Part shown: piece by piece, positions 1 through 31,300 of the stretch
Position numbering within the stretch: the stretch's first letter is position 1
Layout of the letters: every line of letters starts with the position of its first letter
Assembly: GCA_964270895.1 (NCBI GenBank)
Contig: OZ185442.1
Reading direction: 5' to 3' (one strand)
Origin: Podarcis filfolensis
Taxonomy: Eukaryota
Length of the DNA: 64,000 bases
Made by a program: the position numbers and the translations under genes
Notes under the pieces: generated by a model
Told to the model about the DNA's origin: nothing
Databases searched by the model: none
The model's input: only the letters and a program-made list of their open reading frames with translations

Positions 1-6004
<6,004 letters not shown>

Positions 6005-10209: not shown

Positions 10210-10213
<4 letters not shown>

Positions 10214-10257
<44 letters not shown>
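10214..10257. repeat. (CT)n microsatellite
   Basis: Direct reading. Confidence 0.95.
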
Positions 10258-10260
<3 letters not shown>

Positions 10261-10875: not shown

Positions 10876-13800
10876 CTATGTATCTATGTGTGCATGTAGC
10901 TTACTTTCCCAGGTTGCCTTTATTGATGCCAATAATTGCCTAGCTGTTACCCACAGTAGGGCCTAGAAAATGCTCTTGATTTTCTCCAGGCAGGGATAGT
11001 TTCATACAGCAGCAGCCACGAGGCACTTGGCACCCAGTATATGTGCTCACCAGTGTGCCCCTTGTAATTTTCCTTTTGGGAGGGTGGGGTCACTTCCTAT
11101 GACCCCCTCCCTCCCGCCTGCTTTTACAGTAACTCCTGCAGAAGGCCAGGCACACAAGACCTCAGCAATGTGTGGGTCCTGGGCCTGGAATGTTTTCTTT
11201 CATCTCTAATCGCTGCACTGAGGCTCATAAATCATGTAGCCAAGACAACAAGTAAAAACATGACTGTAATTTGTTTCTTCCTGGCCCATTTTTGGCACAG
11301 CAAAACCAGAGACTTTCTTGGCTGGGAATGATGATGACACCATAACAGAAAGCGAGTGAGTGGACATCAACCTGGTGACTCTTTCCCCACCTTCCCTGCT
11401 TTCTTTTTAGAGGTGCCAGGAGGTAGTAGGATGCTGACAGTTATCTCACTGCTGACCATGCTGGATAGAGAATAACACAATTAGCAACCGGATTGTGTGT
11501 GCGGGCCACTTCTTTGAGGGAAAGAACGTCATATTCATGTGTGTTTATTGTCACCAAAGGCAGCTGATCAGATGGTGGAAACAAAATTTTCAGATAAATG
11601 AATTAATATTTTTTATATTTTTCCTTTTGGAGATTGGAGGCAAAACAGGCCTGGTGGTGCAAGAAGTTTATGGATTGAAAAAAAGTTATGTTTTACATTA
11701 TTGTCCTTATTTATATCACGTCCGCAGCAATCCTCTGCAGAATTAAGTGGAAGCAAACCTCACTGAACACAGTTATATTGACTTTGAGGCAAACATCCAT
11801 GGGAATGGGCCACTGGATCCTAATTTCCTGAACCACAGGTGACATGTTCCTGCTCCTAAGTAGTTTAGTGTATGAGTTCAAAACTGTCTCCCATGAATAC
11901 ATAACAATTGATTGACTGTATTGTGATGGGCCACCTCATCCAGAACTGTTTCACAAAGTGGCTCTGGGAAGCTCTCAGATCAGAGCTGACAGAAAGCACC
12001 ATCCCATGTCTGTCTCAAGCAAGTACACTCAGGCATTGACAGCTGGCCACCCCATTAGCCTCAAGCAGGCTTCACCACCGGATGCAACCAGATGTTGTGG
12101 ACATGGCTCTCATAAGCCCCAGCATCATATGGCCATAGTGCCTGGGGTTCATGGGAGCTGAAGTCTGAAACATCTGAAGAGTGACAGGTTGGCAAAGACT
12201 GGCAATGCCACCACTTGAATGGGCTGTGCTGTTGGGCCAGTGCTACACAATCCGACATAATTCTTCAGTTACTATTAAAAAGAAAAGAAGAAAGATAGAA
12301 ACTTTTTTTCCCCCTGAGAATGCCACTGCCTTTATGAGAACAGAGTTTTACACAACTCCTAGTTGGGAGTCCTGGGAAATAAAGGCTTGGGATGTGTGTG
12401 ACTTACTCATTTCTGACTAGCCTGATAAGACCCAAGATGGACCCCACCACCACTGTTGTCTTCCTCCTACCCCTTTCCCTCAGTGGCTGTCAAAGAATAT
12501 GAAGTGGGAGGGAATTCCACAGATCTCTCTTGGGCCTCAACTGAAACTCCCCATTCCATAGCTCACTGGAAGAAGAATGAGGAAAAACACATATTTATAC
12601 CAGAGCCTGCCAAATGGAAAATTATAAAACAGTGGGGAGAGGAGCATGATTGACACACACATAAATAACACTTAGAATGAGACACGTTGTTTAAAAAGAA
12701 GGGAAGTTTTCTTTTCGCTCCATTCCTACTTCAGAAGTTATGACAAGCAACAGCTGACATCTTGTCAAAGTTGTTGGATCCAGTATGTCCCATTGAGTTC
12801 AATGGGCCTGCTCTTACGGCTGTCTGGATCCAGCACCTTATTTGCTGCCAATAGCTACAGCTGCTCTCTCCAACTCTTTTTCTGCATAACGTGAACTGGT
12901 GAAAATGTGCCTCCTTTAGCTTAATAGATAGTGGTATAATGGTAAATTCTGTAGTACAAGAGCTCATCTTGACACAGATAAATTTATAAGTGATGAGAAT
13001 AAGGTGGTGCAATTGGGGCAGAGTGAGGCAGCTGCCTCAGGCAGCAGGGTGGGCAAAAGAAGAGGCAAGTGGAGCTCTCAGAGGGTGAGCTTGGTCTGGC
13101 AGATGACCATCTTCTGGAGTAGAAACAAGCCTTTTTCACTGCCTCTCTAATTTACACATAGTGGGCAAGCAATTCCATTGGTGGGCATTTAGCCCTCTCG
13201 GTCCCCCACCCTTCCCCAGTGCCACCTGTATCCCAAAGATTTTATAGCATAAAGGAAGGAAGGCAACACCTCTGCTATCTCTGTTATCTGCAAACAGAAC
13301 ATGCAGCCCCCAGAAAGGGAAATACAACAACCTTTCAAACATTAATTCAAAAGTAATTCCCAACTACAGCGTTTGAAGCTTTCATGATTTGCAATTGCAC
13401 ATTTAATTTTTTAAAAAATACACTTTTCCAACAGGACTAGATATGACAATGCTGCAAGCAAGCTATTTCTGGAACTCCGCAAGGCTATGGAAATGCAAAG
13501 CTCACATTGAATTTTAAGCAGATATTTTGCTTGTGTAGTAAGAGCATGGTTAGGATCTCTTTAAGCGGGTGACAGCAGGTGTTTATTTTAAATGCAGAAC
13601 AGGTAATTTATTGGTGTTCCACCCATGTGCTCTGTTCCCTGCGGGTATCCGCCCTGGCCAAGGATAGTGTTCATGATTCATGTAATAAAACCAGTTTAAC
13701 AAACCCGTTCTGGTGCCCAAGGTGAAAGAGTCCTACACGTGAGGTGTTTCACCATGTTTAAATGGCTGTTCCACTTTCATTACAGCCTTTTGGAAGCATA

Positions 13801-14106
13801 ACAATGTCACAACTTTCCCCAAAGACTTTTTGAAAGATCTGTTAGTTGTGCCAAACTAGAGCCTAACAGCAACCTCCAGTATGTGAATAGTCCAGCATCA
13901 TGTTCTCATGATGAAGAAGGTGGGCATCCCTACCCGCTGGATCCATGATGTGACTTGTATGGTTTTTGATGTTTTAATCTTCTTATTGACTTCATGTAAT
14001 TTCAAGTCAGTATTTTGCTACACCCTGCTCTGGGATTATTTTAGTGAAGAGCAGAACATTTCCCCATCCCTGAGCTAAGCCCTGAATGTTATAGGAAGTG
14101 TGTGCC

Positions 14107-14149
<43 letters not shown>

Positions 14150-14240
14150 TATTTATTTATTTATATCCCGCCCATCTGGATGGGTTTCCCCAGCCATTCT
14201 GGGTGGCTTCCAAGAAAATATTTAAAATACATTAAAACAT
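14107..14240 (-). repeat. (AAT)n microsatellite (14107-14148) at the tail of an L2-type fragment
   Basis: AAT array followed by atttatttatatcccgccc...ccagccattctgggtggcttccaa. Confidence 0.6.
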
Positions 14241-15226
14241 CAGTCAAATAATAATAATAATAATGCCTGTTTTGTAGCAATACACTCTGCCCAAGCAGGC
14301 CTCTGGCCATTACTCCCTTCATACCCACGACCAGGCTAGATTCAAGTGGGGGGAAACCAACCATGATGCCATTCATCTGTTGGCCAGAGCCAAGGCTAAA
14401 TGGGTTAACCCGCAAGCCTTTGCTGGATTGCCAAGAGAGGAATCATCACCCGCTTCCTAGTCCTGCTCTTCAGCACCCTCTCGTGGGATATGTACACACA
14501 GCAGCTTAAAGTGGATTCAGTGCATCCACACATTGTCCTCATCCAAATGGCAGCCTGAATCCTACCCACAGCTGCTTTAATTTGGATTTCCCCAATATAC
14601 AGATAACGCAGCAAAGGATATAAAGAAAATTTCGTAAGGGGAAAAAAGGCCAACATTGTGTGGTCGAGTATTTTTATTATAAAAAAAAACCTGGTGATGT
14701 TTTTTCTGGATGCCCTCTATTAATACCCTCTGTTACTAAGTCCTGTACTTTCATTGGCAAACTGCCTCCATGGGCCTGAGGCAACATACTTACTTTTTAA
14801 AAAACCCACTGTTTTGTGCAAGTGTGGTATATCGGAAAACTCGTATCTCAGAAATTAAAACAAATTGCCCAGTTCACAATGGGCCTCAGTTTTCCAGAAC
14901 TCAGGGAGGATGGAGAATAACTAATTAAGAGAAAGGAACAGCAACAGGTTGATTTTGGTAGACAACCTGTTTATTGAACATTCTTCCTGATTTGTTTGTG
15001 GGAGGTTGTATGATACCTTATCAAGCATTTTTTTTTTATACCACACTCTCCAGGGCATTGCCCCAGCGCTTTCCTTACTGCAAAAATCCCTTTTTATTTG
15101 GAAGCAGCTTTCTTGTGTAAGAGGGCCCAATCCACTTGAACTGCGCCACCTGAATTTGCCAGGAATGTATTGAATCTCACGCACAAAACAGTAACAGCCT
15201 GGAAGTGGTCTCATTCTGGAGACAGG

Positions 15227-15268
15227 TAATTAATTAATTAATTAATTAATAATAATAATAATAATAAT
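15227..15268. repeat. (TAAT)n/(AAT)n compound microsatellite
   Basis: Direct reading. Confidence 0.9.
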
Positions 15269-16074
15269 ATTTTTATTATTATTTACACCCTTCCCATCTT
15301 GAACCATTAATGGTGTTTGTACTCAATTCTTTCCTTCTACTCTTGTCTCTGGTTGACCAGGTTTGCCAGGTTTTTGAAAAGGGAGGGAGGAATAAAAACC
15401 TTGTTTACTAAAAGCAAGGTGAGCACAGTCAAAAAAATTTACCTGCCTCCAGCTCCAGCCTGTTGTTGTCACAGGTCCTGTTGTTTTGCAAACCACACTT
15501 CCCCAGCCAGATGCATTCCTAGCCTCCCCTTCCTGCGAATGTGAGACTGGGGAGCCAATGCGAGAGCAATAAACCTGGGAGTGAGGAGGAGGAGAACATG
15601 GCAGCACAGTGAGAGAAGCAGGAGCAATTGGTATCACATCAACCTCATAACATTTTGGAGGGCATTATTTTATTTTATCGATTACGATAGGAACACATAC
15701 TTTTGAGGGTAACTTTAATTATTTAACAAAACCCACATGCCACTTGATTGTAATAAAATATCTAAGTGGTTAATTAAAATTAAAGTCAAACAATAGGAGA
15801 CTGTTAAAAACAGGAATTAAAAACATTCAAAAGATAACGTTCCTGTGTGCTGGTGGAGATCTTGAATTTCACTCAGATTTCTACAGCAGAACTGTTGCTA
15901 TCTAACCACTGTGATCAAAGAAGCGCATTCAATATATGAGGCTGAAAGCAGGGGTTTCTCCCCAGAAAGGCTGCTGTGTGTTTGGACTATATTTTTAAAG
16001 GGAAACAACATGCAATAATGCAAAACAGCCAGGGACTCCAAGGTCACATTTGACATACATCAACCCTCTCCCAG

Positions 16075-16180
16075 CTGGTGCCCTGAAGATGCTTTGGACT
16101 ACAACTCCCATCAGTTCTAGTATCACAAGGTTGTGCCAGCTGGGGACTAGGTGAGTGGTAGTCCAAAGGGTACCGGCTTG
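16075..16180. mobile_element. Decayed hAT-type MITE upstream of the novel PKD1L-like gene
   Basis: gatgctttggactacaactcccatca...ggtagtccaaagg, same family as 44409. Confidence 0.45.
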
Positions 16181-16571
16181 GGCAAGGCTGGTATGCATAA
16201 TTTTAAAGAGAGAATAAAGTAGAGAAGCTTTCTCTGGTGATGGTGTCCACACTCTGTTTAAGATGGCAAAAAATAATGTCAAATTTCACTGGAACCTATT
16301 TCCAAAAAGATTGCAGATGTGATCTATTCCTATGTGCCCTCCCCACCACAATCTCGCCCCACAAGCTTTGTCATCCTCCTCTTCCTCCTAGAGTCAAATT
16401 TCCCTGCCCAGTGTTTGTGGAAGCTGCCCAGCTGCCCCCTTGATTTCCATGGGCAAACAGAGACACCGGGAGGGCTTGGCCTCTTCCTTCTCCTGTGTTT
16501 CATGTGGGCTTCTAGCCAGAGGAGCAAGCAGATCCCTGCTGGGACCATCTTGCCTATCCTGCCAGGTTGAG

Positions 16572-19500
16572 ATGGCACTGAGGCGACAGACAGCTCCCGG
16601 CTTAGCCCTGCTGCTCTGGGTCCTGTGCAGCACTGCTGTGCCTGCCACCACGCCTGAGGCTGTGCTAAGGGAGCACCAAGGACATTGCTACCAGCTTGCT
16701 CAGGAAAGACTGGCTTTTGAGGATGCCCAGGCTGCCTGCGGCCGATGGGGAGGGCACTTGGCACAGGTCCCTTGGGAGGTGACAGGGACGTGGGGTGCTC
16801 TGAGAAGGAGGAGGGGGCAGCTGAGAGGGCCCTCTGGAGGCTGGTGGGTCTCCAAGGGCCCAACCAAGCCTGCGGTGGCAGGTAAGTCAGTCCTGTGGGG
16901 GCACCAGAGAGGGCTGGGCAGAGGTGGGAAGTTGTTTCTACTCCAGAGGGTGGAGGGTGCGTCCTGGTTTCTATCACAAAGGCCAGGTCCCTTTACACAG
17001 CTGGCTTGGCTGTGGTTAAAGGCTGGGATTTGGGGAGCCACATTGAGGGGCAGGGTGTGGAGGTGGGGGGCACTGTGCTGCAGAGAGCTGGCTCTTTTGC
17101 TTGTAGTGTAGAATTCTGCTTATTTTCATCTGCTCTGTCAAGGGCATACCACCCCGCTCTGCCTACTGTGGTCAGATCTTACAAGAGGGCAAGGCCCTCA
17201 CCTTGCCCTGCCCAGCTTGCCGCCATGCCCATGGCAGCCTCTTGTGTCTTTGCCCAGGAGCCCAGCCTCATCTGCGTGGGGCTCACCATCAGCCCCCCAC
17301 CTGCACCTTCCTCTCCAACCTGGGCTTGCTGCAGGAGGCTACCGGGCCAACGTGCCGCCAGAGGCATCCTTTCATCTGCGAATTTGGTGAGAGGCCAGCT
17401 GGGCTGCCAGGGTGGGATTGTGACACCCCCACTCCACCCCACCCCTGAGGACAGAGATTGCTCCTCCTGAGCCAGGAGGGGCTCCCTTTCAGGATGGTCC
17501 TTTTTGCAGGTCCTGTGGAGGGAGGTGAATGCCCAGTCAAAGTGGCCAGGAGTGCCAACAGCTCCAGGCCTTGGCAAAAACAGAAGGCTCAGCTGGTAGG
17601 TGATGGTGGCCAGTTCTCTTCCCTCCAAGTCCAAAGCAAATAAGCTTTCCCTCCTGCTGCCTGAAACCAAACTCCAGCAGATGCACCAAGGCAGAGGATG
17701 GGGGGGGGCAATAAAAATAGCCTGTCTGCCACCTCTTAGCCACCCTCCAGACAATTCCTTTGGGCATGATTCCTGGGCAAGCTCCTAACAGGGAACCCTT
17801 TGCCCTGCCCCTTCCAAGAAAGCCTATTGGGTGACATATCCTACCTGGCACAGTGGCACTGCTGTGTCCCACTCTTTTTTCTCTGTCTGCCTCCAGGATC
17901 TGACCTCCATGGGGCGGAGGCCACAAAGGCTCATGCGGCGGCATCTGGGTGATAAGCAGAAGTACCCAGGTGATGTGGGGATTTATTGACTTCTGAAATA
18001 ATGCATTGAAGAGTAGGTCATCTGCAATTATAAGCAATTGTGAGAGGCTGATCATCTTGGGTCATTCTGCTTATTTTAACAAACCCTTTAAATGCCCTAA
18101 AATAATATTTGTGGGGCTGAAAGGGGTATTTTATCTTATTTCTCATAGACCATCTTTTCCAAAAGATTGTAGATGTCAGCACAACCAAAAGATATGCTTT
18201 CAGTCTGCCTGTACAGTATTACAACTCCAACATTTACCAATGGTATTTGTTTAAGCTGTGCCCAAGGGGCAAGGCACCCATGATGGTAACTGTTTTTAAC
18301 AAGTTTTATTTCAGATAAACTTTTATTGCCATGTTCTACCTCTTCCATGGAAAGAGCCTGAAGCAATGCTCAGGATGAAAATAAGCAACTGTAATGATGT
18401 AAAAGCGGGAATATAACTAGTAGCCAGCGGTTCCCTTATCATGAGGCTGATCCTTTTGCCGGTCACGGCAGTGGTTTTCCCCTGAAAGGAAGCAGCTTGT
18501 TGTTGAGACAGGCTCACCGCAAGGAGTTTGTGTTTATGGAGGCCAAAATGCCTGTTTCTGTGTAGGGGGACCCTGAGGGGAGAAAAGACTCTTGCTCATA
18601 CTTCTCCTCTTGCCTCCAGAGACATCAGCAATCAGGGAGGCCTTGCAGGATGTTGTTCCCAGGACCTGGCAGCAGGTAAAAGAGCCCCACTAGGAGGGAG
18701 TATCTGGGGAGGGGACCCCCTTCAGCCCAGCCCCATTGAGGCCCACAGCAGAGCCACCAACCTTCCTCTGGCTCAAGACAGCCAACCTCTCTTCTGGTGG
18801 TTAGCACAGGCCTTATGTAGGCCGGGAATCCCTTATTCAGTGATCTGCATTTGCCTGCCAGCATTTGAGCCCAAACTCCTGATTCTGCCTGCAGGAGCTG
18901 CTCCAGCGACTGACACTGCCGGTGAACAATGGTGCCTGGAGTGCCTCTGAGCTGGTATGATTGGGCCCATGGGGAGGGCGGATGCCCCAGAAGGGACTGA
19001 GCCCCAACTCCAAAGGCTGTGTAGCTCCCATGGGGAACCTGAAGAAAGAGTCAGGCCAAGTCCTAAGAAGCTCTTTCCTCCAAGAGAGGTGATGGGGAAC
19101 ATCTCATGGAAGGAGTCGAGGGACCCCCATTAGTGCTGAGGGTCTTGGGCAATGCATGGGCATGGAGGAACATTAACATTATGTGCCTTTGTGTGCCAGG
19201 AAGAGGAGGTGGGGTTTCTTCAGGCTGTCAGTGAGGACCTGCTGAAAAGGAGGCCTCCAGCCTCCCCACACTGGCACCTCCTCAACCTCCTGGCAGTCCA
19301 TGGCACCAGCCGGCTCCTGCAGGTCATTCTGGGCCCCTGCTCACCCAACGTCAACATCCAGGTGAGGATATGCCACACTCCCAGGTGCCCTGGTGGGGAG
19401 GGACAGGCCGGTGCATGGGTCCCTTCATCCCATATTGCCCCATCTTGGATGGAGATTGAGTCCCCAGTAACTGCCCACTTCTCCCTCCAGCAGCATGAGG

Positions 19501-22500
19501 CCCTGACTGGCACCCTGATGCAGATCCTTCACAAGCTGGAGCAAGCTCTTCAGGAACTGGGGGGCAGCAGTGATGCCATCACCATGGAGACGCCTCTCAT
19601 CAGCATCTATACACACAGGTAAGCTACCAGGCTTGCAGCCACTGGGTAACGGGGAAGGTAGGAAGCTTGACTGGTCTGGGAAGGGAAGGGAGAAAGATCT
19701 TGGCAGGAAGTGTCCAAGAGAAAAGGCCTTGAGGTAGCCATCTGCCCTTCCCTCATCATGGCAGCTGGCTCACATTTGCCTGGCTGTCCTGCAGATTGGC
19801 AACTCTCCTGAGGCACCCTGATCCCAGGCACCATCTGCTGTGCCCTGGCTCTAACCCTAACTCTCTTTGTCTCCCTGGCTCAGGGTGAACTCTTCCAGGC
19901 TGGGCAATATGGCGTTCTCCTTCCCTGGCAACCCATGGGCAGCCAGAGTCATTTTGCCAGAGCAGTCTGCGCTGGGCGCCGTCATGCCACAGAATATCCC
20001 AGTGGATGTGCAGGTCAGAGGGAGCAGGAGTGTGTGGCTGGCCCTCTCCTTTGGACTGGGCACAGGGGCCTTCCCTTTCCATGAAACGCAAACTCTCCTC
20101 TGGCATCTGCTGCTACCCCAGGAGGAGAAGGAAGGCAGAGAGCACCCAGGCAACGAGTCACTTGCTGTGCTGTGGAATGCATGGGGGCCCAGCACTCAGA
20201 AGTGACTTGGCTCCTTCAGATCAGCCTAATGATGCACCCAGAGGCATCTTCCCTCCCTCCCTCTTCTGGAGCCTCATGCTTCTGGGTTGGACTCCAAACA
20301 TTTCATGACACCCCCCTTGCCAACACCCCTGCAACCAAGGCCCCCTGACTTGGCCCCACTCAATCTACCTACCCAGTGCTTCCAACAGTAAGCAGCCATG
20401 TTTCCAAAAATGGGGAGCAGAGCGTGAGGGGGGGGAGCGCCCAGCCATCCTGCCGAGTGTGGCCATGTGGCCGAGCAGGCATGGCTGGTGGGTCAGGCCC
20501 CCTCAGCAGTGGCGCTGCCCTTTCTTCTTCTCTCCCTCTCTCTTTAGATGGTGAGCTTCCTGGGCAGCCCCTTTCCCCCGAGCTCTGGGGAAGGGGTCAC
20601 AGGAGCTGTAGCTGAACTGAACCTCCTTTCTGAGGGCAGCCAGATCAGCGTTAGCAACCTGAGCACCCCTGTCCAGGTATGTCCTGCCTAGAGACTTTGG
20701 GCTGAGTGGAGCCTTCCTCCCTGTAAGGGGGTGGGCTATTGAGCATCTCCAGAGGGCAAGGACAGCCCTCCAGGATCATTTCTCATGGCACGATCTCACA
20801 GTGTGGAGATCAGCTGGATTAGCCACCAGGTAGGCCAGCCGCTTAGCCTGGGAGAGCCTACAGTACAGGGTCTGGTCTCTCTGTCATCATCCTTCCCTCT
20901 CTCCCACCGCAGCTCACCTCCATCAGTGAGGCTGCCTCTGCTCCGGGTGAGAGCCTGAGGCAGCTGCTCATCTCACCGTGGTGGTGCAGTAGCAGCCAGT
21001 GACATCCTGCTCTCTTTTCCCATCCCAGATTTTCCTGCCCCGGGTTGGGCCTACAGCCCCTGCAGAGCCAGCTGCCTTCCTCTCTCCAGGGGAGGCCCTC
21101 CTTCTGACTGCGAACGTGACATGGACAGGGGGATCCCTGATGATCCACGCTCACCTGGACCCTGTGGGGCCTCTGGAGCTCTTCCTGCAGCCAAGCGAGC
21201 AACTCCGGGAGCCCATTGAGCCCAACGTTGGCCTGGGTATAGCAGGGGGACAGAAGAGCTGGCTTCTGCTTCCACTTTCGGCCTGGGGAGTGTGAGGACC
21301 TCTTCCTAAAATGGTTTCCCTTTTGTGTCCCCCCCCCCCGCCCCATCTCCTGCAGATGGCTACACTTGGCTAGTGAAGGAGGAAGTTCTTCGTGACCTGA
21401 GAGGAGCCCTTCAGTTCCTGGTGGTGCCACTGAACCTCTCTGCCAGCCAGGGTCCTGCCACCTTACATGTCAGCACCTATGGGATCCAGTGCGTCTCCCG
21501 GCACCTGCCTGATGCCCAGTGGCAAGAGGCAGGCTGCAAGGTGAGTCTTGGCGTTCAAGAAACAAAGGGAATCTGGGTACCTTGCGCCCCCTACTGCCAG
21601 AGGCAGGGAAGAATCAGAATAGCAGCCTCTGGTCCTTAATAACACTTCTATCCCATTTCAAGACCATACTACCTGTTTCTTTATTTAAAGCATCTGGATC
21701 TCTGTTTTGTGAGAAATATCCAAGGTGATCTGCTGCCCAGAAGTGCCCTTAATCCCACCCTGTTTGCAGGTAGGAGAGAGCAGCAGCCTGGCGGAAGTCC
21801 ACTGCCTCTGCACCCACCTCTCCTTCTTTGGCAGCAGCTTCTGGGTGGCGCCAGTCCAGCTGGATGTGGTGCGCACAGCAGAGTACTTTAGCCAGGTGAA
21901 CAAGAACCCAGTTCTGGTCGTGGTCCTGGGAGTCGTCTATGCCCTCTACTTGGTGGGGGTGGCCTGGGCCCGCTGGTTGGATACACGCCCCCTGCACCAG
22001 GTAAGTTGCTGGGGGGTGAGAGGGCCGGAGGTAAGGGGGGGGGGGCCTGGCAGCAAGCAGCACAAACTCACAGGCCCTTGGCAGCTCTTAGGTGGTGATG
22101 CTCCCAGAAGGGCAGGTCATGCAGCAACAGCCGTCATTTGGAGACTGAACTCTTGGAGGGTCTCCAGCTGCTCTCCCACACCATGTGGAGAGGAAAGGAC
22201 TCTGATCTCCTCACCCCCACCCCCACCCCTAAAGGGTGTGGCTGGCTAGGGACGGGGAAGGCTTCTTATTTGCTACAAATGGTCATGACTGCATTTTGCT
22301 CTCTATAAACATACAGCTGAGTGAGATGCAGCTAACTCTGTTCTGTCTAACGATTCCATGTGGATTTAAGGTTTGCACATCTCTTTGCCAGCAAAAGAGA
22401 TCCCCTTATTCTGGTCTTCACTGGGGCCACGTGGGAAGGACAACTGTATGTATGGGGCCTCAGTGCTCTCTGCTCTCCTGCGCTGCTCCGTGGCAGAGCA

Positions 22501-25500
22501 TGACCCTAGAAACGCCACCCCTCACACCCCTCTCCCTCTCCCAGGCAGGGCCAGTCCTCCTGTCCGATGATGATCCCTGTGCCCAGTATGGCTACCTGCT
22601 CCAGATCTGCCTGCATGGCCAGCAGAAGGCCCCCGGAAGCAGCCCATGTGTGAGTGGTCTGCCCTGAGTGATGGAGGGGGTGGAGTGGGGTGCCTGGTCT
22701 TTGCCCCAGAGCTCACCCAGCCCTTTCATCTCCAGCAGGTCTGCATCTGCCTGCAGGGATCGTCTGGTGTCAGCAAGCCTCGGCGCCTGCCCCTGGATGC
22801 CAGCCTCTTCCTCCTACGGGAGCCATACCCACTGGGAGAGCTCCAGAGCATTTGGTTGTGGCAGGAGCCCCACTCCGCCCCACAGCTGCCCTGGTCAGTC
22901 TGCCCAGAAGTAGGGTGGGTGACATCCCACTTGGAGACATTGTGCTGGCATGCGGACACTGCCCACCTCCCATGGCTTGGCTCTGGGGTGCCAGCCTGCC
23001 TCTGCTGGACATGCCACAATTCTCCCTCTCTCTGAATGGGGCAGAGGTGGTTATTGTGTCAGGGTGCCCATCCTCAGGTACCCTGAGGAGGTGGGGCTGG
23101 AGGGGGTCACCAGCACACCTGGCACTCGTCCAGCAGGGAAGCCTCTTGCTTCTGCCTGACAGGACTTTCTTCTAAGTGGGGCACTAAGAGCACCAGCCTC
23201 CTTCCTGGCACTCATTACCCATCCCCTTCCCTCAGGCATATCGCCCACATCACAGTGCGAGACCTGCAGCAAAGTAGGAGGTTCCATTTCTCTTGCCAGC
23301 CGTGGCACATCCCAGCAGCAGGGGCCCCACACAGCACTGCCCAGCATTTCCTAGCAGCTCCACAGCACCAGCCAACAGCATTCTGGTAGGCTTACCAAGA
23401 GATGGGGTCTGTTTGGGTGTTCTCAGCCCCCACCTGCCCACTGTGCATGAACTTAGCAGGGATCTCTGAACCGCCTCCTCCCAGGCAGAGCTAGAGACTC
23501 CAACTGTCTTCCTCCTCATAGCCTGGCCTTGGGTGCTGCTCCCACCCACCCATCTACTGCTCTCTCTGCAGGCCCATCTTCCGGCAAAGGACTCTGAGCG
23601 GTCTTCGGGAGGAGCACACAGTGCTGACAGTGCTACTGACCCGAACAGGCCACGGGCGGCCCGTCACGCGGGTCCAGGGCCTCTCCTGCGGCTTCTGCCT
23701 CCTCCTCTGCTCTGCCCTTGTGAGCCTCATGTTCTGGGAGGTGCCCCATGATTCACCCGAGCTCCTGAATGTTGGTAAGGGTTGTGCCACATGGGATATC
23801 TCCCAAGGGCCACTGGCATGGAAAAGGGGGCTGTGCAACTCCTCTGCTCCAACTCCTGCCAGTGGAGGAAAGTCCCTCTTGCCACAACTGGAGGGACAAA
23901 CACAGTCATACCCTTTGGGCCGGCAGGAGGGAGGTTCATGTATTAGGACTTTGGAAGAGCCTGGGTGCAGCTGGATCAGGCCAACTGCAGGTGGGATCTA
24001 GCCTAGCATCATGCTTCTCACACAATGGCCACCCGATGCCTCCTGGGAAGCCCACAAGCAAGGCTCCTCTCCTACATTTGATCCCCCACCCCCTGAATCC
24101 AGAGGTATCCTGCCTCTGATTGTGCAGGTAGCAGTTGGTGCCTCCTTCCAGCGTCCCTGGGGCACAAAGAGTGGTGGCTGGTAGGTCCACTTGCAGGCAC
24201 TTTCCCCCCCTGTTGATACACAGGCGGCTGCTTCTCCCTCTCCTGGAAGGACATCATGATCAGTGTGGAGAGTGCCTTGATTACCTTCCCCGTCAACTTG
24301 CTCCTTGTATTCATCTTCCGCCACGCTGAACCACGCAGGAGCCATGCAAAGCCCGGCCTGGCAACGTCTGTGCTCAGTGCCCCTGCCAGCCCAACAACCC
24401 TGGACACTGTGCATGAGGTAGGGACAAGAGCTCTCCAGGACCCAGGACATTTTCCCCATTGTGCCTCCCCTTGGAATAAGGTCAAGGCTGAGTTGGCAGT
24501 GGACAAGAACCCCCACCCGATCCCCAGCTACCTCTCCCTCAAGCCGCATGTCTCCCAGGATCCTTCTTGCACCAGTGAACTTGGTCCCAGGGAGACGTTT
24601 TTGCATTTGCAGATACAGCAAGCACTGGCTTGCCAGAGATTTTTCTCTGTGGCACTTATGGGATGGCTTTTAATAGGTAAGAGAGGATATGTTAATGGCA
24701 ATTTATCCCTCCAGGTGCCCACATTTGTGGGCTGAACATACAAAGAGATCAGCTTATCGCTTTGTTTAAAACACGGGGCTGAGCAGAGTTCAAAGTCTCA
24801 TCCTCAGCAGAAAAATAGAAAGCATAGGAAAATGCTGTGAAGCATTCATTAAATTCAGTCCAGCCACAAAGCAAGCTGGTTGCCCCTTAACAAAGAACCA
24901 GACACAGACTGAGAAGTAAGTTTAAAATATGTTTACTTATTCATAGTCATGCAATTGTTCTCAGCAGCAACAGCAGTAAAATAAATGCAGGCAAAATACT
25001 TATATTTACAGTATGAACAGCTTGAGGCATGTGGCCAATTCTGGAACGATAGGATATATGTCTGCTCCATCACTGGCTGAAGAGAAAAGAGAGAGGGAAG
25101 GAACAGGAAATACTTTGATTCTTCATTTCCAAGAGAGGAGGGAAAATGACCTCACACAGAACCGTCTCTACCAATTACATTTCTATGGTCCAAGTCTCTC
25201 TATCAATAATGTGACCCTATGGTCTTAACCCCTTCACATGCTAACTCACAAAAATATGCATTGTTAGATTTGGCTGCAAATCTCCCACAGCACTTCTCCC
25301 ATCTGCTACATCTTCTTGTGCCCAGCTTTGCCCACCTTACCCTCAGCCTGTTGGGTGCATTTGTGCCCCAGTTGCCTGCCACTCTCCCGTCTATCCGTGC
25401 TTGTCTTTCCCTCCCTAGAGCCTGCGCGGGGCAGTGGAGACGCTGAGCAAAGCCAGCAAGCAGAGCCAACAGCTGCTACATCCCGACATGAACCTTGAGG

Positions 25501-27013
25501 AGCTTCTGCAGTGGCTGGCTCGTTTTATCCACCCTGATCCTGGGGAGGAAGAGGAGGCAGCAGGTGAGAGCCCAGCCATGCCTGCCTGCCTGCCTTGGGC
25601 AGCACTGCTAGACCACCAGAGGATGGTGACGCTGCGGCTTCTGCTTGCAGGGAGGGAGCCCAAGATCTCCAGTGTGGCGCCCAGCCCTGATGCGCTGCAC
25701 CAGACCTACTGCAACCGCTACCTCCTCCTGAAGCTGCGGCACATCTCCCGTCTCCTGGGGGAGCTGGAACCAGGAGTCCCAACAGCCAAGCACCCTCCGG
25801 CTCTGCAGCAGCGCGTGGAGGAGATGGCCAGGCGTCTCGAGCTAGCAAGCCCCATCCGGTCTCGCTCCATGTAGGTAGCTCAGACAGGCTCTGTGAGCAG
25901 GCAGGGAAGCCTACCTTGCAGAGCCTCTTCCTCATGCCTTCCTCTTGTTCCTCCACAGCCGAAGGTGGCACTTGCCCTGGTGGGGCGCCTGGGTGGGGTG
26001 GGCCCTGCTGGTCTCCCTCAGCGCAGTGGCCACCTTCTTCTCCTTGCTCTATGGCTTCCACTATGGCAAGGAGAGCACCAAACGCTGGCTCATCTCCACT
26101 GCCATCTCCATGGGCCAGGCCCTCTTCGTCCTGCAGCCCCTCAAGGTACTTCCCAGCCAGGCTGAGCAAACCCAGCATTCCTGGGGGGCCTTCTCACGGG
26201 AGGTCGGGTTGCCAGACCTCTAAGTCTGATCTGAAGTCTTCAGGTTTGCCTAGTACCCTCCAGGTGGCAGGTGAAGGGCTTGAATCGTTAGATGGGTGAG
26301 AGTTCCAATGGTGTGTGTGTGTGTACACAGAAAACTGTGTATAGAGTGTGCACACTTTGGACCAGCAGGAGCTGGATGCAAATTATAGCACAGACACTCT
26401 GGGGGACTACCTCCACTCTTCTCCTAATTAACCTCTGTCTCTAGGACCCTTGTGACTATACCAGGGTCTGTGCCTCTGACACCACCAGGGGCAGCCCCTA
26501 GGTCTCAGGTCTGGGCCCTGAAATCTCAGGGTCTGTGATACTCCTCAACTGGCAACCCGTAGGGGAGGGGACATCTCAGCAGCAGCAGCAGAAATTACGG
26601 TGCACATACTTCTTCCTCATCTCAAGTATGTGTCTGCCACCTGCCTGCCTGTCTGCCTGCCTGGGACAGGTGTCTGGCATTGGAGCACTGCAAACACCCA
26701 CTGCATCTCCTCTTTTCTTCCCATGAATTTCAAGGGGGTGGGGGAGAATTTAACCAAAGCACCCTCACACATACACCAGTTTGTTGTGGTGTTTTGGCAC
26801 AAAGTGAGGGGCTTGGCTCATCTGGAGAAAGGGAAGCCTACAGATGCTCCCTCTGTTTTATGGATGGGGGGGGCAAAATGGCTGTGGATCCTGCCCATCC
26901 CTCTTCTTCCATGAAACCCACTGCAGGTGATAAGCTTTGCCATCTTCTGTGCCCTGATACTGAAGAAAGCAGAGGATGAAGATGAGGCAGCCCTGGACCT
27001 GGAAGACCGGTAA
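16572..27013 (+). CDS. Polycystin-1-like (PKD1L2/PKD1L3-related) 5-TM protein lacking the channel domain, ~1110 aa, 22 exons
   Basis: Exons: 16572-16881, 17258-17386, 17510-17595, 17897-17969, 18620-18675, 18895-18954, 19200-19361, 19491-19618, 19884-20013, 20548-20676, 21029-21236, 21356-21540, 21770-22000, 22545-22649, 22739-22893, 23236-23385, 23572-23774, 24224-24417, 25419-25563, 25651-25870, 25959-26145, 26927-27013. All introns are GT-AG and phases chain without a stop (3333 nt). Domains: signal peptide (LALLLWVLCSTA), C-type lectin (CYQL..AQAACGRWGGHLA...FICEF), GPS (CVSR..WQEAGCK/VHCLCTHLSFF), TM1, PLAT-like, TM2 (RVQGLSCGFCLLLC), TM3, TM4 (LPWWGAWVGW), TM5 (QPLKVISFAIFCALILKK), then stop. 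Small N-terminal exons 3-6 rest on splice/phase fit only. Confidence 0.8.
24836..25238. mobile_element. Solo LTR-like element in intron 18 of the 5-TM gene
   Basis: Termini TGTGAAG...CTTCACA (TG..CA, inverted). ATGCT occurs on both sides, overlapping the termini by 1 nt, so the TSD boundary is ambiguous. Confidence 0.55.
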
Positions 27014-27699
27014 AGGGAGGAAGGAGGCTTGCAGAAGTTGAAAGGCAGGATGAATTGAAGGAGGGAAAGGGAAAGGGGCCTCTCCAGAGAGGGTTGGGGC
27101 CTGGACTGCCTCCAAGTAGAGAAGGGCAAAGGTGGCACTGAGAATGCCCTGCACCCACTGCAGAAAACAAACTCAAGTTCAAAAAATTCCTTTCACGACA
27201 GTGGCCAGGCAAGAGGAAGGGTTTTCAGTACTACGTCTGTTCCCTCTTCCACCTCCCGTAAGGGAAGGTTATGCACACACAGAGAAGAATCACGCCTCTC
27301 CACTTTGGATTGGCATGACTAGGAGCCCACCTGGACCATTCCTCTGCTGCTTTGAGTGGCCCGGCAAGGCATGCAGACTTGGTGGAGGAATCCAGTTGCT
27401 GGTGTGGGCACCTCTGGTTGCCAAGAGCAGGTAGCCCAGGGCCCGCTCTGGGAGACTCAGAGGATGCAGAGTGGCTACACTAGGCATCTCCTGGGCTTGC
27501 TAAACAGGAAGGAAACACATTGAACTGAAGCCCCTGCAAGGGCAGGACTGGGACTGTCCCCTGTGGAAGGGGAGAAGATTGGGGAGGGACTAAAAGGTAG
27601 TGACTGGCATGTGCACAGTGGGGGTGGAGAGGAGTCACCACCCAGTGGCAGAGCAGCTGCTTTGCAGGCCCCCTGCCTTCCTAACTCTTGACACTCCCC

Positions 27700-27705
27700 A
27701 TTAAA
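27700..27705 (+). terminator. Candidate poly(A) signal (ATTAAA) of the 5-TM gene; alternative AATAAA at 28456-28461
   Basis: First hexamers I found after the stop at 27013. ATTAAA is followed by a U/GU-rich tract. Confidence 0.35.
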
Positions 27706-28803
27706 AAGATCTCGAGTAGTCTCTCTTTGCTCGTGGCCTTGAAACACCACTGCCAGTCAGACTAGAGCAGACATATTAGGTTACCAGTAATTTAACCATC
27801 CTAAGGGACACTGCAGCTCCAGGACTGGGGCCAAGGGAGTAGAAAATATGCTGGGAAGCAGTCCTAGGGCCCCATCCTGACCCACGTCTTCGACCTCTGT
27901 GATTGCAGGCTGTGCTCTTTCCAGTGATGGGAGGACATCTTTCTGCGAGGGCACCTTGGCTTTTGCCACACCATGTGCCCAAGACCTCCAATCAGCCTCT
28001 CCAACATGATGTCACCCACACCTGTACAAAGGCCAGGACCATCTCTCTGGAGGAACGGGAGGGCACAGCATGGGAGGGGGGCAGCGAAGTCCCATTCTGT
28101 AACCTGCCAATGGAGCCAACCCTGAACTCACTGAGTGTTGAAAGAGTTGGGATGCAACTCAGCTTGCTGAGGGTTCGCATGAGGTTAAAGTGGATAGAGA
28201 AGGGAACCTCCAAGATTGTCTAACTGCCCTTTGATCTCTGTGATGACCTTTCCTTTACTATTAGACTGATATTCTTAGGGTTCCTGACAGTGACCAAACT
28301 TCCTGCTTCCCCCTCTTCCTTCTGAAGCTGAAGGAGAGAGGACATCTATGGATGTATCTCTGCCGAGAGTAAAGAGCAAGCATGACTCCCTTGTAGCTTT
28401 AAGATTAATTAGCTAAAACTAGGAACTCTTTTCTATCCAAGTATATATTTCTTATAATAAATGGAGCTTTATTATATTCCAATTTTAAGTACTCTGTGTG
28501 TGATTGCAATGAAGGCAAGCCTCCTCTCCCCAGTAAGAAGTCCATGTGTGCTGTGTGCTATCTTGCAAAGTGATTCAGCACTAGGCGCGGCCCACACCGA
28601 ATAAATGGCAGGCTACAGTTCAGTGGTGTCCATGGAAGCTCTCTTTCACTCTCTGAGGACTTCATGATTGGCTTCTCAGGGGCCCAGGCCCAGATCCAGA
28701 CACCCATTCCCACTTCAAACGCCGTGGTGGCCCCCTGGCAGTGACATGCAGTAAATTGTAAAACCTCATGTGGCTGGCTGGAGGCTCGCCAGCACTTGTC
28801 CAG

Positions 28804-28985
28804 AAGAATCATAGAACTGTAGTGTTAGAAGGGACTGTGAGGGTCATCTACTCCTACCTCCTGAGGAATCCCACTAGCACAACCTCCCTGGAAGGAGGGT
28901 CCCTTCGCCTCCGTTTAGAAACCTCTAATGAAGGGGAGTCTGTCACCTTCCTGTCTGCCCCACTCCCCAACCCCTTGAAATCCCA
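28804..28985 (-). mobile_element. CR1-type LINE 3' end fragment
   Basis: Begins agaatcatagaa (reverse complement of the CR1 TTCTATGATTCT tail), followed by ...tagaagggac...gggtcatcta. Confidence 0.6.
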
Positions 28986-29279
28986 TTTCTTGTCACCCGA
29001 ACTGCTTGGTTATCATACTGTTCTTTGGAGCAAGAGGAATGGGATGTGCCACCTGGGCTCTCAACATTTGCGTGCCAGCGTGCCTTTTATGCAGCAGACA
29101 ATGCAGTTGCTCCTCCTTTCTTCCTCGCAGGGGTGCAGACAATGGCATCCTCTTCTTTGCAAACAAGAGGGCCCATCTCCAGCTGGAGCGCCAGGTGCTG
29201 CACCTGTTCAGCCTCTGGGTGTGGCGCTGCTCTGCTCCTCTTTTCAGCAGCTCCCTCACCTGCTTTCTCAGTTCTTGGG

Positions 29280-31300
29280 CTGAGCGTGCACGGTGTGTGT
29301 GTGTGGGGGGGCGGTTTAGACTATTAAAGGGTGGCCCCGAGCCAGCTTGCTCCAAAGAGGGAGCGGCATGGGGCTCCCTATAGGGATGTGGCTCTGGCTC
29401 TGGGCCGCACAGGTCTCTTCGGAGGAATCGGAGCCCGCCTGCCTGCCCGTGGCAGGAGAGGACTGCTATCGGCTGCTCCGGTGGCCACAACCCGCCTTGG
29501 GTGCAGTGATTGTGTGCGGACGATCCCACGGCCGGCTCCTCCACACGTGGAACCAGCAGATCCAGGACGCCTTGCGCGACCGCCTGGACGACAGGAGCAA
29601 AACCTGGATCGGGGCTGCAGCAAAGGCGCTCCCAGAAGTGAGCCACCCTGGCAAAGGTGAGAGCGGGGCGGGGGCGCAGAGGCCCAACAGCAGCACCGCA
29701 GAAGAGGGGCAGCAGCAGCCAATTCCAGTATACTCTGCCGGGATGTGTGTGATTCCCCACTCAGCATCTCTGACTCGCCCAGACGCCAAACCCCTCAGGG
29801 CAAGACCGCCACCCTCCCTACACGAGGTGGGACCACCGTCTCCTCGTGGGGATCGAGGCGGGGCAGCAAAGCTTCTCACTTCAAGGGCTCAGCCAGGCCC
29901 TGCAGACCCTTCCCTCCGTCGAGGGACCCCGCCCACCTCCTCCCATGCCAAGCCCCGCTGCTGATGGCTCAGCTCTGCAATCTGTGACAGGCAGTCAAGG
30001 AGTGGGGAGGGTTAAAAATAATAATAATGCAAGGCCGTCCGAGGGTTTGCTATCAGGCACTCACCCTATGCAAAGGCTCCCCTTAAACCACTTGCCACCA
30101 CTGGGAGACTCTAGTCTGGAGAGGGAGCGGAGCCCTACAGGGGGCGCTCAGGGCAGCCTCAGCCGGAAAGCCTTATCTTAAGAAAATCCCTCAAAGGCAA
30201 ACAACTGGCGGGCTGGTGCTGAGTGTGGGGTGGCGGGGAAGAGGGATAACCGTGTCTGACGGCGGCGCCTACTCTCCGCAGACCACTGCAAAGTCCTCGT
30301 CCGGAATGGGGACCAATTCTATACCAGGAGGGAGGAGTGTGACCAGAAGCACTTTTTCATCTGCCAGTCTGGTGCGTGAGTCTGCCCGCCCACCGGGGTG
30401 GGAGTTCGTGCCCTCATTCCGCACCCGCAGGGGCTTGGGCAGGGGGCCTCCAGCTTCAAAGAGCGAGAAGGACCTCGTGGCTGAGCTGAGGATGAGGCTC
30501 TCTGGAAGCACGCCTCTGGAAGCACCCCCCACGAAGCACGCCCTTTCGAGGTGGCTGCAACCCCGGAGGCAGGGCCAGGGCCAGGCTCTCCCGAGGCGGC
30601 TGGGCTGGGCCGTCGCAGGTCCTAGAGCCATCCCTGCCGCCCCGGAAGCGCCGCTTCCATGAATCCTCCCGAGCTCAACCCCTTCTGCTCTCTGTCCGCT
30701 ACAGGCCCCCCGAGGACGCCCCGAGAGACTTCCACGCCCTGGGTGGTAAGTTCCCGCCAAAGCAGGTGCCTGCGCAGCCGTCGAACAGAAACGGGCGAAG
30801 GCTCTCTAGGCCGCCCTCGCTGCGCAGCGCCCCCTGGGCTGACTGCAGCGCACCACCGAGCAGCCGGCCCTGGTGACTCTCTCTCCCTGTCTCCCAGAGA
30901 ACGACCTGCCAGCATTTGACGTGCGGCCCGACGGAGGCGACGCCCATCCTCACCGAAGAGCCGACGGCGACTGCTCCTCTGAGCGCCCAGCCCTCCGCCG
31001 CGACTCCTCCGCCGCCCAGTGCTCCTCCAGGAAGCAGCACAGTTCGCCAGCCGACCACCGCTGACATCCAGTCATTCCTTGGGACCAGGCCAGAACTCGG
31101 CACTCCCCGCCATCCGCCGAGCAGCCCCAAGTCGGCATCCAGCACCTGGCCAGCCAGCAACAGCAGCCAGACTCACCCCAACTCTCAGACCTCAGCCCCA
31201 GAGCCCAGCACTCAGCCGCTGCCCACCAGCAAAACCACCTCGGGGGGTACCAAAAGCCACGAGTCCAACACCAGCCCGGACTCCTTCACCTTCAGCCCTA
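29280..31300 (+). promoter_or_regulatory. CpG island / promoter of PKD1L3
   Basis: CpG-rich across exons 1-4. TATA-like CTATTAAAG near 29320, about 45 bp before the ATG at 29368. Confidence 0.55.

Follow-up and report, generated by a model that had tools for sequence, protein, structure and literature searches.

A channel-less polycystin-1-like gene directly upstream of PKD1L3 in Podarcis filfolensis and its relatives in other vertebrates

The window analysed here, a 64,000-nucleotide stretch of contig OZ185442.1 from Podarcis filfolensis (assembly GCA_964270895.1), carries directly upstream of PKD1L3 an intact paralogue of the polycystin-1 family whose product includes the TM1-5/PLAT unit and stops where the S1-S6/TOP unit would begin. 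An earlier note on the same DNA had proposed such a gene, and the open frame, its conservation and the lack of channel exons bear this out. The note had also argued against a pseudogene; the gene has its own spliced and polyadenylated transcripts and is under purifying selection. Its orthologues are the fish "partial pkd1l3" and the short genes of amphibians, and all of them are called S below. We favour the hypothesis, with a probability of about 75%, that it belongs to an old, conserved, channel-less family and encodes a membrane receptor with a role independent of PKD1L3. What is new is the relationship, that of an old gene separate from PKD1L3; short genes of this kind were already known.

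An exon chain guided by proteins of relatives, built independently of the earlier note, reproduces exactly its 22 exons from the ATG at 16572 to a TAA at 27011-27013. Each of the 21 introns has GT-AG ends, and the frame, with 3333 coding nt followed by the stop, contains no internal stop and closes with ...ALILKKAEDEDEAALDLEDR. An ab initio chain (splice matrices with an open-frame bonus) gave 23 exons and 5109 nt with over-extended exons, and was replaced by the homology-guided model. The gene end at 27013, however, needs correction. The TAA overlaps a strong splice donor (CCG/GTAAAG) and is valid only when the following intron is retained. Four RNA runs, taken from two related species, yield spliced contigs in which position 27009 is joined to 27909, and the Podarcis, Lacerta and Zootoca models in RefSeq use the same donor and acceptor and have the same C-terminus. 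With this terminal exon the mature mRNA counts 23 exons, runs on to about 28480 and encodes a protein of 1116 amino acids, five residues longer at its C-terminus, that ends in ...LEDRLCSFQ. The features are as follows; exons 3 to 22 all rest on the homology-guided chain, with further evidence in brackets.

16572 to 16881, plus strand: exon 1, ATG, signal peptide and start of the C-type-lectin-like domain (its CAG/GTAAGT is the sole strong donor yielding the 3333-nt frame)
17258 to 17386, plus strand: exon 2, end of the C-type-lectin-like domain, ...TCTFLSNLGLLQEATGPTCRQRHPFICEFG (match to the N-terminus of the Phrynocephalus homologue)
17510 to 17595, plus strand: exon 3
17897 to 17969, plus strand: exon 4
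18620 to 18675, plus strand: exon 5
18895 to 18954, plus strand: exon 6
19200 to 19361, plus strand: exon 7, helical stalk / GAIN subdomain A (AF2 model)
19491 to 19618, plus strand: exon 8
19884 to 20013, plus strand: exon 9, start of GAIN subdomain B (AF2 model)
20548 to 20676, plus strand: exon 10
21029 to 21236, plus strand: exon 11
21356 to 21540, plus strand: exon 12
21770 to 22000, plus strand: exon 13, GPS motif (HCLCTHL/SFFG) and TM1 (Pfam GPS in the orthologue; hydropathy places TM1 at residues 600-618)
22545 to 22649, plus strand: exon 14, start of the PLAT-like domain (AF2 model, Foldseek)
22736 to 22893, plus strand: exon 15, PLAT-like domain, shortened by a small deletion when compared with fish and frog
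23236 to 23385, plus strand: exon 16, end of PLAT
23572 to 23774, plus strand: exon 17, TM2 (hydropathy; exon end carried by an RNA-contig loose end at 24223)
24224 to 24417, plus strand: exon 18, TM3 (RNA joint of 24417 to 25419 in 4 runs)
25419 to 25563, plus strand: exon 19, cytoplasmic loop (87-nt intron removed from the RNA in 4 runs)
25651 to 25870, plus strand: exon 20, cytoplasmic loop (RNA contigs)
25959 to 26145, plus strand: exon 21, TM4 (LPWW...) and start of TM5 (RNA joint of 26145 to 26927 in 4 runs)
26927 to 27009, plus strand: exon 22, remainder of TM5 and acidic tail (RNA contigs)
27909 to 28480, plus strand: exon 23, terminal, ...(R)LCSFQ, stop at 27925-27927 and about 550 nt of 3' UTR (joint of 27009 to 27909 in 4 RNA runs)
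28456 to 28461, plus strand: polyadenylation signal AATAAA (coincides with RNA-contig ends)
30659 to 46019, plus strand: neighbouring full-length PKD1L3 with channel exons (P. muralis PKD1L3 maps at 76-100% identity)

The 5' end of the model, with the signal peptide and lectin exons, is less certain. Exon 1 is equally long and in the same frame in Lacerta and Zootoca, and the Zootoca RefSeq model begins at the equivalent ATG; the RefSeq models of relatives have differing first exons, and in the Zootoca model alone is this ATG the start. The RNA runs contain just 0.12-0.15 of the words sampled from 16500-18700. Their spliced contigs, obtained from two relatives of the animal sequenced here and from unstated tissue, span exons 17-23. 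They stop at 28461-28482, placing the transcript end about 20 nt past the AATAAA at 28456.

These 3' data bear on whether the gene could be an alternative 5' module of PKD1L3, transcripts of the upstream promoter being spliced from exon 22 into the channel exons to give a second full-length polycystin whose ectodomain differs. The strong donor of exon 22 has the phase of the homologous PKD1L3 exon, and three public gene models fuse both genes; these are annotation artefacts, because they traverse both a further signal peptide and a further lectin domain or, in Amia, skip an entire N-terminal module. Against fusion, all four RNA runs join the donor to the 27909 exon with its stop and AATAAA, and none has a joint or loose end leading from the short gene to PKD1L3, whose first exons have zero depth in these same runs. 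Splicing to overlooked channel exons, which the earlier note had named among the findings that would overturn its proposal, is not seen in these runs; the contigs end in the terminal exon at 28.48 kb. In plaice, moreover, S has no PKD1L3 behind it. We regard the 5'-module explanation as very improbable.

The gene order in the window is S, PKD1L3, IST1. No similarity to the channel domain is found between 27000 and 30800, in agreement with the claim that no TOP or S1-S6 exons precede PKD1L3, and the YRPP...REI exon of PKD1L3 lies at 41100-41243 as had been described. A lectin exon of PKD1L3 is located further 5', near 29.35-29.96 kb. S and PKD1L3 stand in tandem in Lacerta, Zootoca, Phrynocephalus, Anolis, Pelobates and Amia, the last a bowfin. 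S is absent from a turtle locus, and in a gecko it is reduced to a two-exon relic containing a stop. The plaice locus has S and lacks PKD1L3. DHODH adjoins S in Phrynocephalus, Pelobates and plaice; tblastx with the plaice and Phrynocephalus DHODH regions gives no hit in positions 1-16500 of the window, which places the lacertid DHODH further upstream. In a marsupial, the glider, the list of called genes, taken without the DNA, has none upstream of PKD1L3. This and the turtle absence are consistent with the earlier note's statement that the mammalian locus has no such gene, a mammalian absence that rests on called genes and literature.

The encoded protein consists of a signal peptide, a compact C-type-lectin-like N-terminus, GAIN/GPS (HCLCTHL/SFFG), TM1, a PLAT-like domain and TM2-5. 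Hydropathy, which detects the signal peptide and five transmembrane segments, and Foldseek on an AF2 model, which recovers GAIN, PLAT and a polycystin-1-like transmembrane part (from an alignment in which fish and frog sequences prevail), agree with the domain content first read from the sequence; transmembrane prediction and an AlphaFold model had been suggested as checks. The top Foldseek match is to the GAIN fold (E about 1e-6). In the P. muralis orthologue (97.6% identity) the GPS domain reaches 23.9 bits in Pfam against a cut-off of 22.5; HL/S is kept in the lizard motif and the first conserved GPS tryptophan is replaced in lacertids. Pfam PLAT stays below detection (E<=0.01) in the lacertid protein and reaches 42-85 bits in frog, bichir and plaice orthologues. 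The AF2 beta-sandwich matches PLAT domains of lipases and lipoxygenases, in a model shaped by the family alignment. Scanned as raw open segments, the DNA gave only weak GPS in Pfam, and the GPS/TM1 exon by itself had no sequence match in the PDB.

In cryo-EM structures polycystin-1 falls into two units, one N-terminal (TM1-5/PLAT) and one channel-like (S1-S6). Phmmer aligns the lizard protein with PKD1 chain 6a70_B over TM1-PLAT-TM3 and TM4-5, and Foldseek matches it to polycystin-1 chains (6a70, 8zkt and others) over about 550 columns. In polycystin-1 this unit is covalently joined to S1-S6 in the pore tetramer, whereas in S it is the whole membrane part: Pfam finds no S1-S6/TOP polycystin channel domain (PF08016, PF20519) in the protein, whose C-terminus lies 22 residues past the LKK that follows TM5. 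S proteins stop about 15-28 residues beyond this LKK with an acidic tail, and the lizard protein fits; counted from a TM4-5 probe, the tails measure 14-28 residues in all members and 17 in lacertids. Adhesion GPCRs have the GAIN fold and the HL/S motif in common with S, in which cleavage and tethered-agonist action are putative, but carry a 7TM bundle after the GPS; S has no secretin-like bundle of this kind, and presents five transmembrane segments with an intracellular PLAT instead. Sea-urchin proteins of the REJ1/REJ2 type are polycystin-1/REJ members without the channel-like unit that act as receptors. They differ from S in their truncation points (one or two transmembrane segments) and ectodomains, and orthology is not implied.

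The frame of 3351 nt has neither indel nor stop across three lacertid genera, in which intron lengths differ. Lacerta and Zootoca have all 23 exons with zero indels and the same AG/GT sites and stop (44 of 44 splice dinucleotides kept). Exact orthologous exons give dN/dS of 0.31-0.41 in lacertids, with bootstrap upper bounds of 0.43-0.56, not exceeding that of the N-terminal part of the neighbouring PKD1L3; a ratio near 1 and scattered stops, the signs of decay, are thereby ruled against in Lacerta and Zootoca. Earlier HSP-based ratios of 0.50-0.65 were inflated, probably by HSPs running into introns, and were replaced. The S exons of Anolis and Phrynocephalus are open too.

The squamate genes nevertheless could be transcribed relics on their way to loss, open by chance or through recent constraint, the family job being gone as it already is in geckos, turtles and mammals. 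Such an explanation draws on the long squamate stem branch (0.91 changes per column in the ML tree), on the loss of about 30% of family-invariant residues (54-55 of 177 positions in squamates vs 2-20 in amphibians and fishes), on a PLAT domain under the Pfam threshold in lacertids, on the gecko relic and turtle absence, and on the fish copies having been taken as remnants (England et al. 2017, PMC5318412). The intact frame and splice sites in three genera, the dN/dS well under 1, the spliced and polyadenylated transcripts and the open exons in Anolis and Phrynocephalus speak against it, and we consider it unlikely. Squamate S has undergone a burst of change, mainly in PLAT, followed again by constraint. 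Since S is missing in a turtle and a relic in a gecko, it is dispensable in several amniote lineages.

A profile search built from trimmed members retrieves more than 190 short proteins with GPS and PLAT and no PKD_channel domain from teleosts, sturgeon, gar, bichir, frogs, newt, caecilian and lacertids. In an ML tree of the shared GAIN-TM5 region the S clade (support 99/95) contains all short genes, follows the species tree internally and places squamates as sister to amphibians. Tetrapod PKD1L3 and the bowfin downstream gene form a clade of their own (97/98), and S lies outside the PKD1L2 clade (100/97). Assignment of the lizard gene as a PKD1L3 orthologue was rejected on its separate clade and missing channel unit, and as a PKD1L2 orthologue on the tree and the differing domain lists. 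The general polycystin-1-like N-terminal module is common to PKD1L2 and S, whose profile scores PKD1L2 above PKD1L3, but true PKD1L2 has about 2450 amino acids with Gal_lectin, REJ and channel domains that S lacks. A bowfin protein with an S-type N-terminal module and a channel domain, tried as a full-length S, proved by mapping to be a chimeric model of two tandem genes.

PKD1L3, a partner of PKD2L1, is the tandem neighbour of S and shares with it the order of lectin head, GAIN/GPS, TM1, PLAT and TM2-5. It differs in its S1-S6/TOP unit, the common part is 31% identical, and S has its own promoter and polyadenylation site. This adjacency, with the same orientation and domain order, would suit a recent partial tandem duplication in which the lizard's own PKD1L3 gave rise to a copy of its N-terminal half, an origin to which we give almost no credence: identity is 31% to the neighbour vs 35% to frog and bichir S, the S clade is well supported, and a tetrapod-only duplication of S with tetrapod PKD1L3 is rejected (p-AU 0.008). 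A sister relationship of S and PKD1L3 is compatible with the data (p-AU 0.129). As S adjoins PKD1L3 in lizards, frogs and bowfin, the pair predates the split of ray-finned and lobe-finned fishes.

The gene is not unrecognised. In lizards, amphibians and ray-finned fishes S is annotated in RefSeq, wrongly as PKD1L2, and the fish orthologue has been published as a "partial pkd1l3" without channel domain that is being lost, gar and teleosts having the short gene without PKD1L3 (England et al. 2017, PMC5318412). The zebrafish protein (ENSDARG00000091803, 1083 aa) has Lectin_C, GPS and PLAT and no channel domain, as in the lizard. Both belong to the same clade and a similar size class, with DHODH neighbourhood in plaice, Pelobates and Phrynocephalus, and plaice S shares the lizard 3' architecture, a TM5 exon followed by a short terminal exon. 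Lizard S is 32-35% identical to fish members and its PLAT signature is degraded. The fish gene was read as leftover pkd1l3, but S stands beside a complete PKD1L3 in Podarcis, Anolis, agamids, frogs and bowfin, and is therefore a separate gene and not a PKD1L3 remnant. We incline, with some reserve, to see S as a sixth, unnamed vertebrate polycystin-1-like subfamily, separate from PKD1L3 and PKD1L2 before the ray-finned/lobe-finned split and kept channel-less for more than 400 million years.

The S protein would be a membrane receptor, the counterpart of the polycystin-1 N-terminal unit standing alone. Because it lacks the S1-S6/TOP unit, it would have no access to the polycystin-1 seat in the 1:3 pore with PKD2-type subunits. 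Signalling or anchoring could proceed through the ectodomain, with its lectin head, GAIN and possibly a GPS-tethered stalk, and through the cytoplasmic PLAT and loop. The earlier suggestion of an accessory or decoy of PKD1L3 is unlikely as core role, given S without PKD1L3 in plaice, gar and teleosts and the zero depth of the first PKD1L3 exons in the RNA runs. We propose a role independent of PKD1L3 because fishes without PKD1L3 keep S.

For the lizard itself this is a modest finding, a diverged but constrained member of a family whose gene several amniote lineages lost. The record is corrected on two points: the fish "partial pkd1l3" corresponds by orthology to a gene distinct from PKD1L3 and is no decaying copy of the latter, and the RefSeq name PKD1L2, misassigned by similarity, is wrong for hundreds of S proteins. 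If S is indeed a sixth subfamily, fish S would be a functioning gene that outlived true PKD1L3 in most ray-finned fishes, non-squamate amniotes would have lost S, and the GAIN-TM1-PLAT-TM2-5 module would be an autonomous receptor or signalling unit. The role of the isolated polycystin-1 N-terminal unit is a question of polycystic kidney disease research. The S family, which spans bichirs, teleosts, frogs and lizards and includes zebrafish and Xenopus members, consists of the first polycystin-1 unit only and lets the TM1-5/PLAT unit be studied without the channel half.

S, the short gene directly 5' of PKD1L3, is a self-contained transcription unit encoding a secreted-pathway protein with five transmembrane (TM) segments, the counterpart of the N-terminal unit in polycystin-1-type proteins. 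The window (51% G+C, no runs of N) carries the following genes.

16572-28480, plus strand: S, a short channel-less polycystin-1-like gene
30659-46019: PKD1L3, mapped in the window
49100-52300 (about 49.1-52.3 kb), minus strand: IST1 exons downstream of PKD1L3, found by tblastx to the Anolis IST1 region

The order S-PKD1L3-IST1 is the conserved one; window 1-16500 yielded no DHODH. The YRPP...REI exon of PKD1L3 maps to 41100-41243, as first read, and nothing in 27000-30800 resembles a polycystin channel unit, in line with the previous claim that channel exons are lacking before PKD1L3.

A search of 1.84 billion representative proteins with the GPS/TM1 exon of S (21770-22000) gives as best match a 940-aa protein of Podarcis lilfordi (99% identity). 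The name "polycystin-1-like protein 2" is attached alike to the RefSeq/GenBank models of S from P. muralis (936-938 aa), P. raffonei (1107 aa) and Lacerta agilis (975 aa). The gene model, built with proteins of relatives as guides and refined at each junction, reproduces exactly the 22 exons of the earlier note from ATG 16572 to TAA 27011-27013, with 21 GT-AG introns and 3333 coding nt plus stop, the open frame ending ...ALILKKAEDEDEAALDLEDR. A strong donor, CCG|GTAAAG, overlaps this stop, and the S proteins of relatives terminate in ...LEDRLCSFQ, their additional residues coming from an exon at 27909. Logan contigs of four RNA runs (X1-X4) from two related organisms (95-99% alike), placed on 24100-30000, join 24417 to 25419, 25563 to 25651, 26145 to 26927 and 27009 to 27909 in all four runs, and 25870 to 25959 in one of them. 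RNA coverage of the terminal exon reaches 28461-28482, with an AATAAA at 28456. With the joint at 27009 to 27909 and this coverage, the mature mRNA has 23 exons and encodes a protein of 1116 aa. The protein does stop just after TM5, as proposed, but the C-terminus first given is an intron-retained reading. The final protein is 98.3% identical to that of P. raffonei, 97.6% to P. muralis, 93.7% to Zootoca and 93.6% to Lacerta, which places the source of the window among Podarcis-like lacertids. In the four runs no joint or loose end on 24100-30000 heads downstream of the terminal exon, and depth is zero over the region of the first PKD1L3 exons (29.2-30.0 kb).

Some features of the transcripts and models deserve mention. 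Intron 19 (25564-25650) has 87 nt, is in frame and stop-free, and would lengthen the TM3-TM4 loop by 29 residues if retained; it is removed by splicing in all four runs. At 24102-24252, contigs of X1, X3 and X4 cross the boundary of intron 17 and exon 18 unspliced, about as deep as the spliced form, and represent unspliced precursor or intron retention. Low-depth contigs of X2 and X4 lie at 28805-29141, between the polyA site of S and PKD1L3; at 28805 and 28835 they have loose ends in both directions, a pattern of a repeat or an unrelated transcript. The first exons of the P. raffonei model XP_053257891 (window 16745-17386) are in a different frame (MGRALGTGPLGG...) and join the lectin frame only at ...TCTFLSNLG. 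The 5' end of S is poorly annotated across lacertids, since the models of relatives begin at four different places.

Mapping of the 23 exons onto the Lacerta agilis and Zootoca vivipara loci reveals identical lengths for every exon, no indel over the 3351 nt, every AG acceptor and GT donor retained and a common terminal stop as the sole stop. Intron lengths, unlike exon lengths, vary between these genera.

Pairwise dN/dS of S (Nei-Gojobori, all 1116 codons; bootstrap 95% interval in brackets)
Window and Lacerta: 0.41 (0.28-0.56)
Window and Zootoca: 0.31 (0.21-0.43)
Lacerta and Zootoca: 0.39 (0.26-0.55)

The lectin, stalk/GAIN and membrane parts have similar dN/dS, and the N-terminal part of neighbouring PKD1L3 gives 0.43-0.48 by a cruder, HSP-based method. 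The view that S is not a pseudogene is supported: stops are not scattered, dN/dS is not near 1, transcripts are present and no joint in the four runs leads into channel exons. The structural interpretation of S as a channel-less polycystin is supported.

Hydropathy of the 1116-aa protein predicts a signal peptide at residues 7-25 and TM segments at 600-618, 803-821, 847-869, 1033-1051 and 1076-1094. Pfam detects GPS alone in the lacertid protein (23.9 bits) and no PLAT there; in the frog, bichir and plaice orthologues PLAT scores 42, 85 and 82 bits, respectively. Against PDB sequences, phmmer matches S to human polycystin-1 (6a70_B) over TM1-PLAT-TM3 and TM4-5. The P. muralis orthologue was modelled in AlphaFold2 with a 69-member family alignment (pLDDT 76, pTM 0.49); the model arranges in order a helical stalk, a GAIN beta-sandwich up to the GPS, TM1, a beta-sandwich where PLAT is expected, TM2 and TM3 with a hairpin between them, a helical loop region and the TM4-5 stretch. 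In the PDB, Foldseek matches the model to GAIN domains of adhesion GPCRs (E about 1e-6), to the polycystin-1 chains in PC1/PC2 complexes (about 550 columns) and to PLAT domains of lipase and lipoxygenase. As the model leans on fish and frog alignment rows, a PLAT domain in lizard S is rated no more than likely.

A profile built from trimmed short members has no fewer than 196 matches with E<=1e-30. The 120 matches listed are short, about 635-1210 aa (complete models about 900-1200), with GPS and PLAT and without PKD_channel, the exception being a chimeric Amia model. Their sources are numerous teleosts, sturgeons, gar, bichirs, frogs, a newt, a caecilian and Zootoca; none of those listed is from a mammal, bird, turtle, crocodilian or snake. 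All members end 14-28 residues past the TM4-5 probe, and in plaice, as in the lizard, a short terminal exon stands about 900 nt beyond the TM5 exon. The GAIN-to-TM5 region common to 49 sequences (S, PKD1L3, PKD1L2, elasmobranch and lamprey relatives; 812 columns) was analysed in IQ-TREE under LG+C20, with PKD1 and PKD1L1 as outgroup.

Support for clades (UFboot/SH-aLRT)
S, whole: 99/95
Ray-finned S: 100/100
Tetrapod S: 100/99
Squamate S: 100/100
Amphibian S: 99/98
Tetrapod PKD1L3: 100/100
PKD1L2 including lamprey: 100/97

S falls outside a weak pairing of PKD1L2 and PKD1L3 (81/76), and S and PKD1L3 as sisters are not rejected (AU test, p 0.129). A tetrapod-only duplication, uniting tetrapod S with tetrapod PKD1L3, is rejected (AU p 0.008). 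Proteins of Pristis and Amblyraja (about 1700-1800 aa, named PKD1L2) cluster with PKD1L3 (90/88) and not with PKD1L2, so that a PKD1L3 orthologue seems to exist in cartilaginous fishes; England et al. could not find PKD1L3 in elephant shark (PMC5318412).

The tandem arrangement recurs. S precedes PKD1L3 in Lacerta and Zootoca; in Anolis open S exons lie at 2974-8436, immediately 5' of PKD1L3, with IST1 after. Phrynocephalus has DHODH(-), S and PKD1L3 as one fused model, then a 369-aa gene; Pelobates fuscus has DHODH(-), S and an 1836-aa gene, and in P. cultripes S and PKD1L3 make up one fused model. In plaice, DHODH(-) and S are followed by unrelated genes. The bowfin (Amia calva) protein MBN3299417 ('PK1L2 partial') could be taken for a channel-bearing S. 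On locus L003 (10001-34600), mapping resolves it into a chimera of two genes, with S exons (10.0-15.5 kb) joined to the channel exons (30.6-34.6 kb) of a downstream complete PKD1L3-type gene that has its own complete N-module (24.8-30.1 kb); IST1 is next. The downstream gene has one in-frame stop, in the PLAT exon 27558-27677, in a gap-rich assembly. As a separate complete gene behind S, it indicates that bowfin retains a PKD1L3 orthologue. Its grouping with tetrapod PKD1L3 (97/98) and the tandem arrangement indicate that the pair predates the ray-finned/lobe-finned split, more than 400 million years ago.

In the turtle Emydura macquarii (L006, 8237-10001), only 1.8 kb separates DHODH from PKD1L3, there is no S-like match between them, and S has been lost. 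The gecko Eublepharis macularius has two S-like exons alone between these genes, one for GPS/TM1 and one for PLAT that contains a stop (3355-3585 and 4285-4398), which look like a pseudogene. Among the genes called in a marsupial, none lies in the 10 kb upstream of PKD1L3. A long stem branch (0.91 changes per column) leads to the squamates. Podarcis retains 123 and Phrynocephalus 122 of the 177 alignment columns at least 90% conserved in 65 fish and amphibian S proteins, and the individual fishes and amphibians checked retain 157-175. The losses are concentrated in PLAT (TGHR, AGT and WHD motifs, a short deletion), with further loss of the first GPS tryptophan (lacertids) and the Asn preceding HL. 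Such clustering, together with the present dN/dS of 0.3-0.4, fits an early-squamate burst of change followed by renewed constraint; relaxation and adaptive change are both compatible with the data.

England et al. (2017) described a "partial pkd1l3" adjoining dhodh in zebrafish, other teleosts and gar, the zebrafish protein having 1083 aa with Lectin_C, GPS and PLAT and no channel domain, and reported gar and teleosts to be without PKD1L3 (PMC5318412). Our literature search brought up no study of the short gene in tetrapods. With S in RefSeq under a wrong name and its fish orthologue published, the gene is less novel than first assumed. What is new is that the short genes of lizards, frogs and fishes form a single old family, distinct from PKD1L3 and coexisting with it; the published "remnant" reading of the fish gene therefore needs revision. 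Gar and teleosts lost PKD1L3 later and retained S, the opposite of that reading.

The role of S may be approached from its architecture. In PC1/PC2 cryo-EM structures such as 6a70, the S1-S6 unit fills one seat of a 1:3 tetramer with PKD2-type subunits, and TM1-5 and PLAT lie at the periphery. Lacking the S1-S6 unit, S would be unable to serve as a pore subunit. We privilege the hypothesis that it is a receptor or anchoring protein, whose ectodomain would act through the lectin head, GAIN and perhaps a GPS-exposed stalk of the kind proposed for polycystin-1, and the cytoplasmic PLAT and the long TM3-TM4 loop would form a second acting part. A decoy or accessory role for PKD1L3, suggested in the earlier note, is not the best guess because S is kept in fishes without PKD1L3 and the RNA runs cover S and not PKD1L3. 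Association of S with other PKD2-type channels is possible.
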